NCBI GenBank assembly: GCA_000388065.2
Contig: KB932206.1
Reading direction: 5' to 3' (one strand)
Source: Fonticula alba ATCC 38817
Taxonomy: Eukaryota > Protista > Nucleariida
DNA: 6,982 nt
Each line of letters opens with the position of its first letter. Position 1 is the stretch's first letter. The translations under genes were made by a program, and so were the position numbers. This document shows positions 787 to 6,851 of this stretch, in pieces. The notes under the pieces are model-generated. The model did not search any database, was not told the origin of the DNA, and saw only the letters and a program-made list of their open reading frames with translations.

Positions 787-888
787 TCAAGCGGGGACAT
801 CTTCTCGGAGGAAGGTCACCAGGCAGCCAGATGCGATGCACTGGATGGTCTCCTGCAGTGGCCCAAGCACGGACTGGGGGAGGTTGTT
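787..888 (-). CDS. CDAN1: Terminal exon 9 ([33 protein letters not shown])
   Basis: Acceptor CATGTAG ends at 889 (136-nt intron 8), phase 0. 33 codons with amphipathic-helix character, then TGA at 789-787. This frame is not in the ORF track. Confidence 0.72.
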   Translation of the reverse strand, partial: NNLPQSVLGPLQETIQCIASGCLVTFLREDVPA

Positions 889-2687
889 CTACATGGCAGC
901 CGCCACGGTTGTTCGAAGGGGGGCGTGGCCGGTGTGAGGGAGGGAGGGGGGGGCGGGGGCGGGGGTGGGGGCGAGGGACCGGCCGGGGCGGGCAGAGGCA
1001 CGCATGGCAGGGCGTTCGGCGTACCTGGAAGTGCAGGTCAATGGATTGGCGCAGGCGCTCGCACGCGGCCAGGCGACCGCGCAGGAGCATGATGGGATCG
1101 GCGGCCGGTGCCGAGCCCGGGTCGCTGGTCGGGTCAAGCAGTATCCGGCCCAGCGCCAAGGGGCCGGGCCCCACAACGCAGGCGTCCTGCAGGGCCAAGC
1201 GCAGCAGCAGGAGGCGCTCCCGAAGGAGGGCCTGCATGTTGGGCTCCGTGCTGGGGGCCAGATCCTGGAAGCCGAGGAGCGCGTCGCGGACAGCCAGCAG
1301 CAGGGCCGGCAGGGCGTCCGAGGGCGGGCCCGCGGCCGGTCCCTCGCGCAGCCACAGCCGATGGGCAACCCTCGGCGAGGACTCCGGGCCCAGGCAAAGG
1401 GCCGTTCGGCAGGCGGAGCACGGGGTGGCGGCCGGCATTGGCCGGGCGGCCACTTCGAGGGCCGGGCGCTTGTGCTGCCGGTCGCCAGCCGCCGGGGGAT
1501 CCTGCGTCAGACGGAGCCAGCGCTTGTGGAAGGACCGGATGCTGGCCACCGTGGCGATGCTGACTCGGCCGTCGCCGGGGCCCAGGGCCATGGCGCCGGA
1601 CCCGGCGCCAGATGGCCGACCATGGGCCGACAGCCAGGCCTCCTCATTGGCCCCGATGCTGGCCAGCGCCAGGGTGAGGCTGACATCGGCAGGGTCGCCT
1701 GGAGCCGGGGCCGACGGCCGAGACGGCTCGTCCCGGGCCAGGGCCGTGCCTTGGACCACCAGCCGGGCGCAGAGCGCGCTCAAGCGCGTCCGGCCGCAGC
1801 TCACCGAAAAGAGCAAGGCATAGTGTGCCACCAGGGGAGGGGTGTCTGCTCGGGAGGCGCGTGTGTGCGAGAAGGCGATCAAGTGGAGGAGGGTGAGCGG
1901 GCATGGGGGGNNNNNNNNNNNNNNNNNNNNNNNNNNNNNNNNNNNNNNNNNNNNNNNNNNNNNNNNNNNNNNNNNNNNNNNNNNNNNNNNNNNNNNNNNN
2001 NNNNNNNNNNNNNNNNNNNNNNNNNNNNNNNNNNNNNNNNNNNNNNNNNNNNNNGGGGGGGGGGACGCACCCGGCGGAAGCAAGGCCCGCAGGGCAGCCG
2101 CAATGCGGTGCTCCAGCTCGCGGAAGACCCCGTCGGGCCCCGGTGCGCCGGTGTGCGGAAGCATGTCCCCGGCGGCGAAGGGGGCCGGGCAGCGGAGCTC
2201 GAACAGGGGCCCCGACGTGGCGCCGGCCCCGACAAAGTCCGCCATGGATTGGACCACCTGGGCGAAGTCCGGCGGCAGGGGCCCCTCGGCCGATGGAGGC
2301 CGTGGCCGAGGGGCCGAGGCTCGAGCAATCTCCATGTTCATGGCGATTTCCAGGCGCGCCGAGAAGACGGCCAGGGCCGACCGCGTGGCGATCACTTCGC
2401 CGAGGGACCGCAGCCCGCTGTGCTGCAGCGAGAACCACCGGATCAGAGACCGCTCGCTCGTGGAGGGGGGCTACAGACGGGTCAGCAGACTGCCCGGGGG
2501 CAGGGCGGCGGGGTGGGCAAGGAGGCGAGGGGGCCATGAGGGGGCAGGTGGGGAGGAGGCAGAGAGCCGCGCGCCTGCCTGCCTGCCTACCTGCCTGCCC
2601 GGCCTCGGAGTGTCGATGCCCGTACCTCGGGCTCGGTGGCGGGCGAGGGATTCAGACGCTTGGGGGCCACCCTACGGGGAGGCGCGG

Positions 2688-2723
<36 letters not shown>

Positions 2724-3267
2724 TGGTGGCGGCGGGGGCAGCCGATGAGGCCGTCAGGGAGGCTGGTGGCCGGGCCACGCCGGCCATGGTGCCCGCTGGT
2801 GCCGGGGATGCGGGTGTCGCGGAGGATTGTTCGACCATGGCGGCGACGTGTTCCACAGGGCTGGGATGGCCGCCAGGCCCGCGCAGAGCATCGCGGCTCC
2901 ATACCGTGGCGGCGTGCGACGTGCCGAAGAGCATGCCTAATAGCCGGCTGACGGCGGGCGCGGGCCCGAGCGCCGCCAGCAGGCCGGCCGCCCAGGGGGA
3001 CAATGTCAGTTCGACGGCCGGCCCATCGGCGGGCCGGTCGAGCGTGGCAACAGGCGCAGGCGTCGTGCCGACGAGAGTGGCACTCGTTTGAACGTGCAGC
3101 ATGGCCGCAAGGCGGAGGGCGGCCCCGGCCAGCGGGAGAGACCCGCGGCTTCCGAGACCGGGAGACCGGCACAGCAGCCGGCCGAGCAGTGTATGTGCAT
3201 TGCGCAAGGCCATCCCCACGGGAGGCTCGGCAAAAAGACTGCACCATGTGACGGGAGAGGGAAGAGG

Positions 3268-3312
<45 letters not shown>

Positions 3313-4875
3313 GTGTGCGTGTGTGCGTGTGTGTGTGTGTGTGTTCCCGTGTGTGTGCGTGTGTGTGTGTGTGCGCGTGTACGCGCGAGGGAAAGAGGGG
3401 AGCACCGTCAGCGGTCAACATCCAGACGGAGGGCCACCCCCATGCAAAGGGCCACGCACCCCGGCCAGGCACGCGCATAGGCCAGGCACACGGGCAGTAC
3501 GATGAGCAAACGCCCGAGGGCGTCCATGGTGTCGGTTGAGCGTGGGCTGTCGCCTGGCCCGGCAACCGCCCAAGTGAGCAGGGCATCCACCCGGAGCGGT
3601 CCAGCCGCCCGGCCGAGCAACAAGCGGCGGGGGTCGTCACTCGGCGGAGGGTCCGACTCGTTGGAGCTCGGGCCGAGGGCCGCCCGGGCCAGGTCAAGTA
3701 GCCGACGGTCGACAGCCCCGGCCGGCGGCGAGGGGGGGCCCAGTCGCCCGGGGGCCGATGCCCCGCCGGCCAGGTGCTGGGCGATGCATGCATGCAGCTT
3801 CCCGAGGAAGACACACAGGTAGATGCCATTCACCAGGGAGGGCGTCCCGTGGCCGGTGCCGCTCAAATGCCGGAGGACTGGCCAGCTGGTGTCAGAGTAG
3901 CCGGGCGGGTGGGTGGGGGGGGGGGGACATGTTCCGAGTGACCGGGCCCCGGGTCCAGGGGAGAAGAGGAGGGGGGGGGAGGCGGGAGGGGAGATGAGCG
4001 CACCAGATAGCAGCCGCTCCAACACCAGCGTCTCCACAGCCCGGAGAAGGCGGCTGTGGTCGGCAGCACGTAGAAACTCGAAGGCGAAGGCTTCCTGGTC
4101 CGAGTCGAAGGCGGTTTCGGGCGGCCCGGCCCCGAGCCAAGAGACCGGGGCCGTGCTGCCGGCAGGCGTCCATGAGCACACCGCGCGCGGGAGAGGCGCC
4201 GCGCCCTTGGCGTTGGCGGTCGAGGCGGCGCCTTTCGCCCCTGCGACCGGGGCGCCGGGTTGCGCACCGGTCCGCGCCGCCGGGCCGGCCAGTCGCTGCT
4301 CCAGTAGGCGCTTTCGCCGGGCGGCCGCGTCCTCGGCCTGATGGGCACCGGACAGAGGGAGCACCAGGCTACCAGGATGGCGGACCGGGCGTTGGTGGCG
4401 CTGGTAAGAGGGTCGAAGAGGGGAGCGGGCGGGGGGGGAGACAGGGGCCACAGCTCCAAGGCCGCGAGGGGGGAAGAGACCCAGCGCACCGGTTCAAGCA
4501 GAAGCCCAGAAAGGCCCGGGCGAAGACATCCAGCATGCGGTCATGCCGATGCCCGGGGGTTGAAGAGCGGCCCAGCGACACATCCCACTCGGCCGGCGCC
4601 GGGCCGAGGGCACAGTGAACCGTCTGTCGGGCCTTTTCGACAAGCCACCACTCGGCCTGCGGCCGGGCGGCGCCGGGGCCGGTGCCCGGATCGGCCTCGG
4701 CCAGGCCCGGCGGCCCTTCGGCCAGCTGTGCGCTCGCCGCGTAGGACCCCTCGATGTCGAAGAGCCGAGCCGCCTCGCTCAGCATGTCCAGAGCCCGCTC
4801 GAGGCGCGAGTCCAGGTAGTGCCCGGAGAGGCCAACTATGCGTGCGCGCGCGAGCACACAAACATACACACGCAT

Positions 4876-4970
<95 letters not shown>

Positions 4971-5405
4971 TCGGGGGAGTGGGTACGGGGGGGGGAACAC
5001 AGCACCAGCGAGGCGCGCGTCACCGGGGAAAGGCGGGGCCAGGAGAGGGACACAGCGCCAGCGAAGCGGTTGGGTCAGAGCCGGCGGGACGCGGACGGGG
5101 CAAGGGCAGCTCGGCCCGGGACCGGGAATCGCACGCACCGAACGTGGACGAGGGGGTGTCCCAGGCATGGCCGCCGTCGGGCAGCATGTCGGCTGGGGGG
5201 TCTTCCGGCCGGGGGTCCGGGTCGGAGCAGCCCAGGCTCCCGGCCATGACTGCCAAGCAGAGGGCCATCGGGCTGGCTGAAGAGTCGAGCCCCTCGCCGG
5301 GGGCCGACGGCGCGGNNNNNNNNNNNNNNNNNNNNNNNNNNNNNNNNNNNNNNNNNNNNNNNNNNNNNNNNNNNNNNNNNNNNNNNNNNNNNNNNNNNNN
5401 NNNNN

Positions 5406-5464
<59 letters not shown>

Positions 5465-6851
5465 TCGGGGGAGTGGGTACGGGGGGGGGAACACAGCACC
5501 AGCGAGGCGCGCGTCACCGGGGAAAGGCGGGGCCAGGAGAGGGACACAGCGCCAGCGAAGCGGTTGGGTCAGAGCCGGCGGGACGCGGACGGGGCAAGGG
5601 CAGCTCGGCCCGGGACCGGGAATCGCACGCACCGAACGTGGACGAGGGGGTGTCCCAGGCATGGCCGCCGTCGGGCAGCATGTCGGCTGGGGGGTCTTCC
5701 GGCCGGGGGTCCGGGTCGGAGCAGCCCAGGCTCCCGGCCATGACTGCCAAGCAGAGGGCCATCGGGCTGGCTGAAGAGTCGAGCCCCTCGCCGGGGGCCG
5801 ACGGCGCGGCCGCCACGCGGAGCAGCCCCAGCAGGTCGGCATCCGAGTGCCCTGCCAGCGTCTCCAAGCTGCATGGGTGCCGGCGGTGGCCGCAGGGGCG
5901 AGTGTGAGTGCGTGCGCCGTGGGGTGGATGGGGCATCATGGGGGAGTGCATGCGCGCACGCACCTGGGCCAGTGAAGGGGAAGGGGCTGGCGATCGGGCC
6001 GGAGCTGGGTGCCGGCCACCTGTAGCAGGCACGCCAGCACCGGGCAGAGGCCGGCAAGCCGGAGGGCGCGCAAAATCAGGCGCCCCAGCGCGAGGGTGGC
6101 CAGCAGCATGGCGCACCCCGGGCAGCTCGACCCGGCGGCCGACACCGCATCGGCCGGGGCCAGGCGCATCAAGTGCGAGATCACCTGCAGGGCGCCCAGC
6201 AGAGCCGACACGGCGCCCACCGAGCCCCCCAGGGCCACGGCCACCGCCAGAGGCAGAGCCTCCTGGGTGCCGGTGTCGAGCGCTTGCAGGGCCGGCCGGT
6301 GGTCCGGGCCGAAGTCCGGCAGCAGGAGTCGCCCGGCCGTCGGGAGTCGCGGTGTCCTGGCGCAGGCGGGGCTCGCCGGTGCCCGCCCGGCTGCGCTCGG
6401 GCCCGCGGCCGGTGGAGTGGTTGTGGCCAAAGTCACGGCATCCAGGCGCTCTGTCAGCCGGCGCTGGAGGAGATCCCCCGGGGGGGAGTCCGGGCCGAGT
6501 GTCTCCCTGCGGGGGGTTTCCTGTGAGTATGGGCCGGATGGGGAGGAGGGGGCGGCCAGGCGGAGGCGAAGGCGGGGCCGAGTTGGATGTCACGCACGGG
6601 GGAGGCCCGTCGGGGGCGGAGAAAAGCGGCGAGAAGTTCGCCGACCTGACCCCGGCCACCGGGGTGGTGGTCAGGCGCTTGGGACGCGATGGCGACCGAG
6701 GCGCCGGGGCGATGATGGCCGGCGCCGGGGCCGGCCGGGGCTTTGGCGCTGGCGCACATGCGCATTGCTCCATCCACACGAGCGGGAGCTCGCCGCGAGC
6801 CAGCTGCTCAATCAGCCGGGCCAGCTGGCGACCCACGTCTGGCGGCGCCAT
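787..6851 (-). CDS. CDAN1: Codanin-1 homologue, 9 exons, 1407 aa as modelled
   Basis: The splice model joins ORF-track segments through 8 GT-AG introns with all phases compatible. Collinear matches to recalled human CDAN1: [14 protein letters not shown]~VLESLLREEVSVAAVVRW; KRLTTTPV~RRINPTPV; [12 protein letters not shown]~GRLWRLQERLMA; [29 protein letters not shown]~[28 protein letters not shown]; [13 protein letters not shown]~RRAVLTVPWLVEF; RRVAPKR~RKITPT; [21 protein letters not shown]~[21 protein letters not shown]; [14 protein letters not shown]~AVRALLPEETPAAV. No database search was run. Confidence 0.8.
938..971 (+). repeat. G-tract cluster in intron 8 (G-quadruplex-type motif on the template strand)
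   Basis: gggagggagggggggg-c-ggggg-c-ggggg-t-ggggg: more than four G3+ runs with 1-nt loops. Confidence 0.7.
1025..1845 (-). CDS. CDAN1: Exon 8 ([13 protein letters not shown]...RQSIDLHFQ)
   Basis: Acceptor GAGCAG ends at 1846. The junction recreates RALLPP-DTP, matching the recalled human RALLPEETP. Donor CAG/GTACGC at 1024. 821 nt, phase 1 to 0. Confidence 0.82.
1911..2054. other. Assembly gap (144 N) inside intron 7
   Basis: N run flanked by G6 (1905-1910) and G10 (2055-2064), consistent with a break at a G/C homopolymer. Confidence 0.95.
2071..2470 (-). CDS. CDAN1: Exon 7 ([30 protein letters not shown]...ALRALLPP), Codanin-1_C-like region
   Basis: Branch-like CTGAC (2485-2481) precedes acceptor CTGTAG ending at 2471 (155-nt intron 6). 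Donor CCGG/GTGCGT at 2070. 400 nt, phase 0 to 1. Confidence 0.85.
2573..2599. repeat. Short (CCTG)n/(GCAG)n microsatellite in intron 6
   Basis: gcctgcctgcctgcctacctgcctgcc on the plus strand. Confidence 0.8.
2626..3238 (-). CDS. CDAN1: Exon 6 ([23 protein letters not shown]...[28 protein letters not shown])
   Basis: Acceptor GGTGCAG ends at 3239 (221-nt intron 5). Same frame as ORF 2587..3405. Donor GAG/GTACGG at 2625. 613 nt, phase 2 to 0. Confidence 0.82.
2683..2733 (-). repeat. Coding (GCC/ACC)n repeat encoding AATTAATTAAAAAAAAA
   Basis: (gcg)n with two gtggtg interruptions on the plus strand, in frame in exon 6. Confidence 0.9.
3271..3380. repeat. Interrupted (GT)n/(CA)n microsatellite in intron 5
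   Basis: About 110 nt of gt repeats with gc and ttccc interruptions. Confidence 0.95.
3460..4368 (-). CDS. CDAN1: Exon 5 ([27 protein letters not shown]...CLAYARAWP)
   Basis: The acceptor CCTGGTAG ending at 4369 is the AG that keeps the frame (121-nt intron 4). Same frame as ORF 3408..4451. Donor GTGCGT at 3459. 909 nt, phase 2 to 2. Confidence 0.78.
4490..4835 (-). CDS. CDAN1: Exon 4 ([19 protein letters not shown]...[11 protein letters not shown])
   Basis: Acceptor CGCATAG ends at 4836. Same frame as ORF 4369..4971. Donor CCG/GTGCGC at 4489. 346 nt, phase 1 to 2. Confidence 0.8.
4876..4970. repeat. Perfect (GCAC)n/(GTGC)n microsatellite in intron 3, about 24 units
   Basis: 95 nt of uninterrupted gcac. 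A further 59 nt of the same repeat lies at 5406-5464 in the duplicated block. Confidence 0.95.
4912..5809. repeat. 404-nt perfect direct duplication (4912-5315 = 5406-5809) separated by a 90-N gap (5316-5405)
   Basis: Base-by-base comparison at offset 494 shows no differences, including the G9 run. Both copy boundaries coincide with the gap edges. Confidence 0.92.
5633..5868 (-). CDS. CDAN1: Exon 3 ([14 protein letters not shown]...WDTPSSTF)
   Basis: Acceptor CATGCAG ends at 5869 (95-nt intron 2). Donor TTCG/GTGCGT at 5632. 236 nt, phase 2 to 1. Confidence 0.8.
5964..6506 (-). CDS. CDAN1: Exon 2 ([22 protein letters not shown]...PLPLHWP)
   Basis: Acceptor CCCCCCGCAG ends at 6507 (91-nt intron 1). 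Same frame as ORF 5936..6436. Donor CCAG/GTGCGT at 5963. 543 nt, phase 2 to 2. Confidence 0.8.
6598..6851 (-). CDS. CDAN1: Exon 1 ([22 protein letters not shown]...[10 protein letters not shown]...DGPP)
   Basis: ATG at 6851-6849 is followed directly by a helix resembling the CDAN1 N-terminus. Third codon positions are strongly G/C in this frame. Donor GTGCGT at 6597 (phase 2). The frame is also open back to a YAG at 6913-6914, so an upstream exon is not excluded. Confidence 0.7.

Follow-up and report, generated by a model that had tools for sequence, protein, structure and literature searches.

One Fonticula alba gene, cut in two at a scaffolding duplicate, encodes a protein with candidate Codanin-1-like ASF1-docking motifs

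We show here that positions 787-6851 on the minus strand of a 6,982-nucleotide (nt) stretch of the Fonticula alba ATCC 38817 genome (the window, meaning the whole stretch analysed) are one real gene encoding a protein of about 1365 residues, and that the public annotation wrongly divides this gene between two hypothetical proteins at a scaffolding duplication. The sequence of the window matches part of scaffold KB932206.1 of assembly GCA_000388065.2 exactly. A first-pass annotation made from the sequence alone had attributed the DNA to a GC-rich, possibly Fonticula-like protist, and the organism is F. alba itself. The same annotation had read the gene as a full-length Codanin-1 and would have abandoned the idea for a metazoan genome; F. 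alba, a slime-mould-like amoeba (Rotosphaerida, Opisthokonta), is a non-animal opisthokont. The motifs described below suggest that the protein is quite possibly a divergent Codanin-1-like scaffold for the docking of ASF1, either an orthologue of human CDAN1 or something near to one, and we propose this tentatively, as a lead and not as a finding. Whatever its Codanin-1 status, the correction of the public record holds: two F. alba "hypothetical proteins" are one gene.

The splice model runs from a start ATG at 6851 to a TGA stop at 787-789 and comprises ten exons and nine GT-AG introns, with a coding sequence of 4098 nt (1365 codons) and no internal stop. At 72% G+C, the window has long stop-free stretches in shifting frames on the minus strand, and the exons were assembled by linking these stretches through GT..AG sites. 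Exon 1 (6598-6851, 254 nt), placed by frame and phase, uses the same ATG as the upstream public model, and its product is a short N-terminal helix-like stretch followed by a Pro/Ala-rich linker. Exon 2 (5964-6506, 543 nt) was placed by phase and its open frame, and exon 3 occupies 5633-5868 (236 nt). Read in the frame of the model, these three exons have codon log-odds of +16, +79 and +44, and both other frames give negative values; G+C at third codon positions is 0.83-0.90, and exons 1-3 share the codon signature of the publicly annotated exons 4-10. Exons 4 (4490-4835, 346 nt), 5 (4004-4368, 365 nt), 6 (3460-3877, 418 nt), 7 (2626-3238, 613 nt) and 8 (2071-2470, 400 nt) come from the splice model and agree with the downstream public model, H696_04145. 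Exon 9 (1025-1845, 821 nt) is 100% identical to H696_04145 residues 759-1031, and the C-terminus encoded by exon 10 (787-888, with the stop) is identical as well. All junctions from 3/4 to 9/10 are reproduced residue for residue in H696_04145. The introns are 91-303 nt long, counting intron 3 with its duplicate collapsed, and are C-rich on the sense strand; seven of the nine carry the donor GTGCG[TC], an unusually uniform 5' splice site. The frame is open with acceptors at 6506, 4368 and 3877, which also agree with the public models. Placing these acceptors at 6520, 4400 and 3885 instead gave clashing phases and nine stops, and that version was discarded.

The public annotation places two models on this gene, one of 383 amino acids (aa) at window 6851-5514 and one of 1064 aa, H696_04145, at 5268-787, the latter named "hypothetical protein H696_04145 [Fonticula alba]" at NCBI, where no Pfam domain is recorded for it. 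That the gene appears only as fragments in a view of open reading frames, and that it might be annotated only as hypothetical, had both been pointed out in the first-pass annotation; the public annotation fragments it too. Taken at face value, the two gene calls describe two separate genes, and the four RNA-seq runs described below contain no reads that would show one transcript. We nevertheless regard two genes as very improbable, since the split coincides exactly with a fault of the assembly spanning 4912-5809, where positions 4912-5315 and 5406-5809 are letter-exact copies of 404 nt on either side of a 90-N gap (gap 2, 5316-5405). The right copy begins within a (GCAC)n microsatellite. The final 177 nt of exon 3, present again at 5139-5315, fall within the duplicated stretch, as do the exon 3 donor and the beginning of intron 3. 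H696_04145 starts at a Met in the left copy (exon-3 residue 36), and the 43 residues common to both public models are the last 43 of exon 3 and the first 43 of H696_04145. Exons 1-3 extended into intron 3 as far as the first stop give 383 aa with the same limits as the upstream public model, the last 39 codons of which come from intron 3. Moreover, splicing from the donor GTGCGT of exon 3 to the acceptor of exon 4 keeps the frame and is identical whichever copy is used. A duplicate of 404 nt with a run of N between its copies looks like overlapping contig ends that the scaffolder left unmerged. The sequence would then be continuous, with one copy and the N run spurious and nothing that need be missing, and intron 3, 797 nt in the scaffold, would measure 303 nt once the duplicate is collapsed.

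Both N runs of the window are intronic. The other one, gap 1 (1911-2054), lies in intron 8 (1846-2070, minus strand) and is flanked by poly-C runs (2055-2070 and 1905-1910). Splicing across it keeps exons 8 and 9 in frame, and the resulting junction, LLPP/D/TPPL, is present in H696_04145. Given that the frame is open on both sides of the gap, read-through as poly-proline is conceivable, but the donor GTGCGT and the public model favour splicing, and the true length of the gap is irrelevant unless intron 8 is unreal. The beginning of the gene deserves more caution. Runs of 1,935 and 1,257 N (6352-8286 and 15269-16525 of a 24-kb locus) enclose the window on either side. The longer one starts 131 nt ahead of the ATG, and no in-frame stop separates the two, so that the promoter, the 5' untranslated region and any further 5' exon are unread. 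The 129 nt ahead of the ATG score as non-coding, and ATG 6851 is the probable 5' end of the gene. Of the complete nine-exon gene at 787-6851 that the first-pass annotation described, the limits were thus exact, the exons number ten, and the completeness is not secure.

What the protein might do is best approached from human CDAN1, a scaffold that sequesters ASF1, regulates histone supply and partners the nuclease CDIN1. Its first MIF4G domain is split by a loop (residues 64-298) carrying a B-domain at 193-203 (S194, R195, R196) and a histone-H3-mimic helix at 249-260 (R251, L254, R255, R258). The second MIF4G domain holds a second H3-mimic helix at 539-550 (R541, R544, L545, R548, L549); a second B-domain at 820-833 (M824, R825, K826), placed behind the second helical domain, is followed by a three-helix bundle, and a C-terminal MA3 domain binds CDIN1 (PMC11911400; 10.1101/2024.07.10.602876). 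We refer to the N- and C-terminal copies of these elements as BD-N and BD-C for the B-domains (BD) and HMH-N and HMH-C for the H3-mimic helices (HMH). B-domains are short ASF1-docking motifs in which two basic residues stand side by side (PMC11911400).

Two B-domain-like motifs are found in the F. alba protein. The first, KRLTTTPV (6657-6680, minus strand; model residues 58-65, followed by AGVRS), reads PKRLTTTPV in context and lies in the Pro/Ala linker, which follows an initial ~30 residues. The second, a 13-residue tandem (2638-2676, minus strand; model residues 909-921), has PKRLNPSPA at residue 914 and RRVAP ahead of it, and sits after a low-complexity run and ~30 residues before the next helical block. 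Both were picked up by a regular expression and by comparison with BD-N. The expression [KR]R[ILV]xx[ST]P[VA], which draws in part on presumed human letters, matches the protein twice (58 and 914) where 0.006 matches are expected, and none of 5000 shuffled sequences reached two. The protein was also scored with four short strings of human motif sequence, 45 letters in total, with anchors taken from the papers and the other letters presumed. The strings agree with all 14 residue identities named in PMC11911400 and 10.1101/2024.07.10.602876. For the partly presumed BD-N 15-mer, the two best matches in the protein fall at 912 (score 32) and 56 (score 27), scores that were reached together in 3 of 3000 block shuffles. 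The pairing of these B-domain-like motifs raises the odds that the protein is related to Codanin-1, and the two B-domains that characterise the Codanin-1 family would be present here at the level of motifs only.

Between the two lies a candidate H3-mimic helix, RKRLLEQRL (4290-4316, minus strand; model residues 478-486, H696_04145 residues 177-185), within a low-confidence predicted helix (DSSP helix 138-186). The expression [KR]xxxLxxR[ILF] has three matches in the protein (478, 1079 and 1267) against 0.2 expected. The match at 478 is also the best match for the partly presumed HMH-C 12-mer; it fits all four HMH-C anchors, with the spacing of R541/L545/R548/L549 in CDAN1 and of R12, L16, R19 and F20 in the TLK2 helix (PMC8826447). 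A further stretch of 11 residues resembling the third helix of histone H3 (6443-6475, minus strand; model residues 96-106), read from the sequence, had been proposed in the first-pass annotation as an H3-mimic helix. It fits three of the four positions of the same expression, which keeps it as a weak candidate, and the HMH-N string gave no signal.

The order of elements along the protein is B-domain-like motif (58), H3-like helix (96), H3-mimic-like helix (478) and B-domain-like motif (909), which is the BD, HMH, HMH, BD order of CDAN1, and the key HMH-C positions, R-x3-L-x2-R-L, are kept at residue 478. The two proteins are also comparable in size (1365 aa versus 1227 aa in human). Like CDAN1, the F. 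alba protein is largely helical in low-confidence models, with a long disordered linker near its N-terminus. It differs in having ~28 residues before that linker rather than 63, and in that its second motif resembles human BD-N and not BD-C and comes after ~85 low-complexity residues, whereas human BD-C directly follows the core. A collinear resemblance in the central region to what we take to be the human CDAN1 sequence, judged by eye, is given no weight beyond that of a lead. If the resemblance extends to function, the two basic strands at residues 58 and 909 would add to the edge of the ASF1 beta-sheet, while the RKRLLEQRL helix would fill the histone-H3 site of ASF1. ASF1 held in this way could not pass on H3-H4, as with human CDAN1.

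The same motifs could also have arisen by convergence in a different ASF1 or histone-chaperone partner that does not derive from Codanin-1. Short motifs with two consecutive basic residues occur in HIRA, CAF-1 p60 and Rad53, and, with TLK2, these proteins illustrate how such convergence might look; moreover, neither Pfam nor a phmmer search of PDB sequences detected homology to CDAN1. Yet the other known carriers of B-domains are WD40 proteins or kinases, not all-helical proteins of ~1300 residues such as the F. alba protein would be by its low-confidence models, and the four-element order matches that of CDAN1. We regard a convergent partner as unlikely.

Against a Codanin-1-like scaffold stand the sequence searches, which ran exon by exon and with H696_04145, together with several features of the motifs themselves. 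Pfam hmmscan at E<=10, with H696_04145 and all exon pieces as queries, returned no family, Codanin-1_C included; the HMMER filters discard most matches above E of about 0.1, so that a very weak Pfam match is possible. A phmmer search of PDB sequences with eight queries spanning all ten exons (E<=10) gave no relevant chain; its chance matches, among them ExbB, transketolase and VPS18, had E above 0.7, and the presence of CDAN1 chains in the PDB copy searched was not confirmed by name. When exon 9 was run through exhaustive phmmer against 1.84 billion representatives, H696_04145 itself was the sole real match; this exon is a poor query, because the conserved part of Codanin-1 corresponds to human residues 400-850 (PMC7092493). 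Word searches with H696_04145 residues 1-1064 and 236-560 likewise had only the protein itself among the matches listed, and of 88 pattern matches in a metagenome scan none was confirmed as a relative. A CDAN1 relative would be very unlikely to surface in such a word search, which calls for shared exact 5-mers and a score of about 33 bits or more against 5.8 billion sequences. Two language-model look-ups had no Codanin cluster among the neighbours, which were virilizer, MEI1/PRD1, LINES, Dopey, Nup192 and HEATR5A, generic HEAT/ARM-like proteins that all scored below 0.9. Such a complete failure of detection at the HMMER level lowers the odds of a Codanin-1. It is offset in part by the extreme composition of Fonticula proteins and by the poor conservation of Codanin-1 outside human residues 400-850.

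The motifs carry their own reservations. They are short and sit in a protein in which Arg, Leu, Pro and Ala abound, and the patterns were picked after the sequence had been seen, and so are post hoc. The HMH-C score at 478 is equalled by 23% of shuffles, and the partly presumed BD-C and HMH-N strings gave no signal against the protein. The ~85 low-complexity residues that separate the structured core from the second B-domain-like motif also fit poorly with CDAN1. In addition, the prior for Codanin-1 in this organism is low, because surveys of the family include no choanoflagellate, fungal or nucleariid member: by BLASTP, Codanin-1 is found in most animals and a few protist lineages and not in choanoflagellates, and neither fungi nor nucleariids are named (PMC7092493).

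The structural data do not separate a Codanin-1 from other helical scaffolds. AlphaFold2 run without an alignment gave a mean confidence (pLDDT) of 40.5 for H696_04145 and 44.7 for its residues 44-530, values at which the packing is unreliable, and both models consist entirely of helices and long coils of low confidence. The protein is predicted to be mostly alpha-helical, with long Pro/Ala-rich disordered linkers. Foldseek on these models returned no match at E<=0.001, and VIA-align matched only helical hairpins, with Z of 8-10, which the notes of that tool give as background for helical models. As for the order of domains in CDAN1 (MIF4G, MIF4G, three-helix bundle, MA3), the models show only all-helical secondary structure. 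The central region of CNOT1 (MIF4G, MIF4G, a DUF3819 three-helix bundle and a MIF4G-like domain) is a structural relative of CDAN1. The F. alba protein would resemble it as a large all-helical scaffold, again by low-confidence models, but differs in that none of the Pfam domains of CNOT1 (MIF4G/CAF1-binding, DUF3819, Not1) was found in it at E<=10.

These results would also fit if the protein were a fast-evolving, lineage-restricted alpha-solenoid (HEAT/ARM-like) scaffold with some other role, its motifs being chance products of an Arg/Leu/Pro/Ala-rich sequence. No relative was found by HMMER, by word search among the matches listed or by the metagenome scan, nor any match in Pfam or PDB; the nearest language-model clusters are unrelated helical repeats; the structural matches are generic hairpins from models of low pLDDT; taken singly, three of the four partly presumed human motifs fall short of significance; and the composition (A 18%, L 14%, P 12%, R 8%) is of the kind in which such motifs might arise by chance. 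What speaks against a solenoid of other function is the rarity in shuffles of two near-identical PKRLxx[TS]P[VA] motifs (0 of 5000 and 3 of 3000 by the two tests above) and the placement of the B-domain-like motifs and the R/L helix in the order seen in CDAN1. On balance we hold this explanation to be a distinct possibility, if a doubtful one. The claim of a full-length Codanin-1 is without support from any tool, as Pfam, phmmer against PDB and the language-model neighbours are all silent on Codanin-1. The profile check that the first-pass annotation had itself suggested, HMMER with the Pfam Codanin-1_C family, was among the searches described above and gave no match at E<=10. By that annotation's own rule, under which a significant profile or structural hit was needed, the Codanin-1 claim fails for now. 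The family test is weak, and the motif-level evidence, which points toward a Codanin-1-like protein, is suggestive of the link.

If the protein is Codanin-1-like, it may be a true CDAN1 orthologue or may merely share the layout of the motifs, and the interpretation as a docking scaffold favours neither. H696_04145 and the model upstream of it may together represent a true Codanin-1 orthologue, one that has diverged extremely in this nucleariid amoeba; we consider this possible, though somewhat less likely than not. Codanin-1 orthologues have already been reported from oomycetes and diatoms (Swickley et al. 2020, PMC7092493), including the Phytophthora homologue F441_15879 of 1340 aa (PMC7092493), and the suggestion in the first-pass annotation that the system would be new outside animals was therefore overstated. 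These proteins, non-animal and of similar length, would be the nearest published precedent outside Metazoa if the F. alba protein is homologous. They differ from it in being found by plain BLASTP with the human sequence, while the F. alba protein was not found by such methods. A mark of the Codanin-1 family is that genomes encoding it also encode CDIN1 (C15orf41) (PMC7092493).

Were the orthology true, the CDAN1-ASF1 module, presumably with CDIN1, would already have existed in the ancestor shared by animals and fungi, with vertical inheritance rather than transfer to stramenopiles, and with later loss in fungi and choanoflagellates. The question left open in the literature is whether the scattered protist Codanin-1 proteins reflect horizontal transfer from animals or an ancient origin with many losses (PMC7092493). 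A copy in the lineage that is sister to fungi, if the Codanin-1 link holds, would point to an ancient origin and would settle this question. Work on a protein that causes a human anaemia when mutated could then also be done in a simple amoeba. New in this case would be Codanin-1 in the fungal sister lineage; the gene itself, as two hypotheticals, and Codanin-1 outside animals are already public.

Four large RNA-seq runs filed under the same species label contain no reads on positions 787-6786 (6 kb), which is no test. The reason is either absence of this organism from the runs, or very weak expression of the gene or poor sequencing of it at 72% G+C.

Several repeats lie in and around the gene. 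The product of exon 7 ends in an Ala/Thr/Pro-rich low-complexity run of ~85 residues, and a (GCG)18 repeat in that exon (2684-2739) encodes poly-Ala just ahead of the second B-domain-like motif. Intron 6 holds (GT)51 (3271-3373) and intron 3 holds (CACG)25 (4869-4970). In the 3' flank of the gene, a C-rich run at 4-49 (~46 nt, 77% C) and a G28 tract at 418-445 matched no open reading frame, tRNA or Rfam family, and scans of the window for Rfam families and tRNAs were empty. Among the neighbouring genes called at positions 900-24482 of the 24-kb locus, the only surroundings covered, none has to do with histone supply, and CDIN1 and ASF1 are both absent; these neighbours are the genes for ribosomal L27A, a short-chain-dehydrogenase-like protein, a TPR protein, a SNARE and MCM5.

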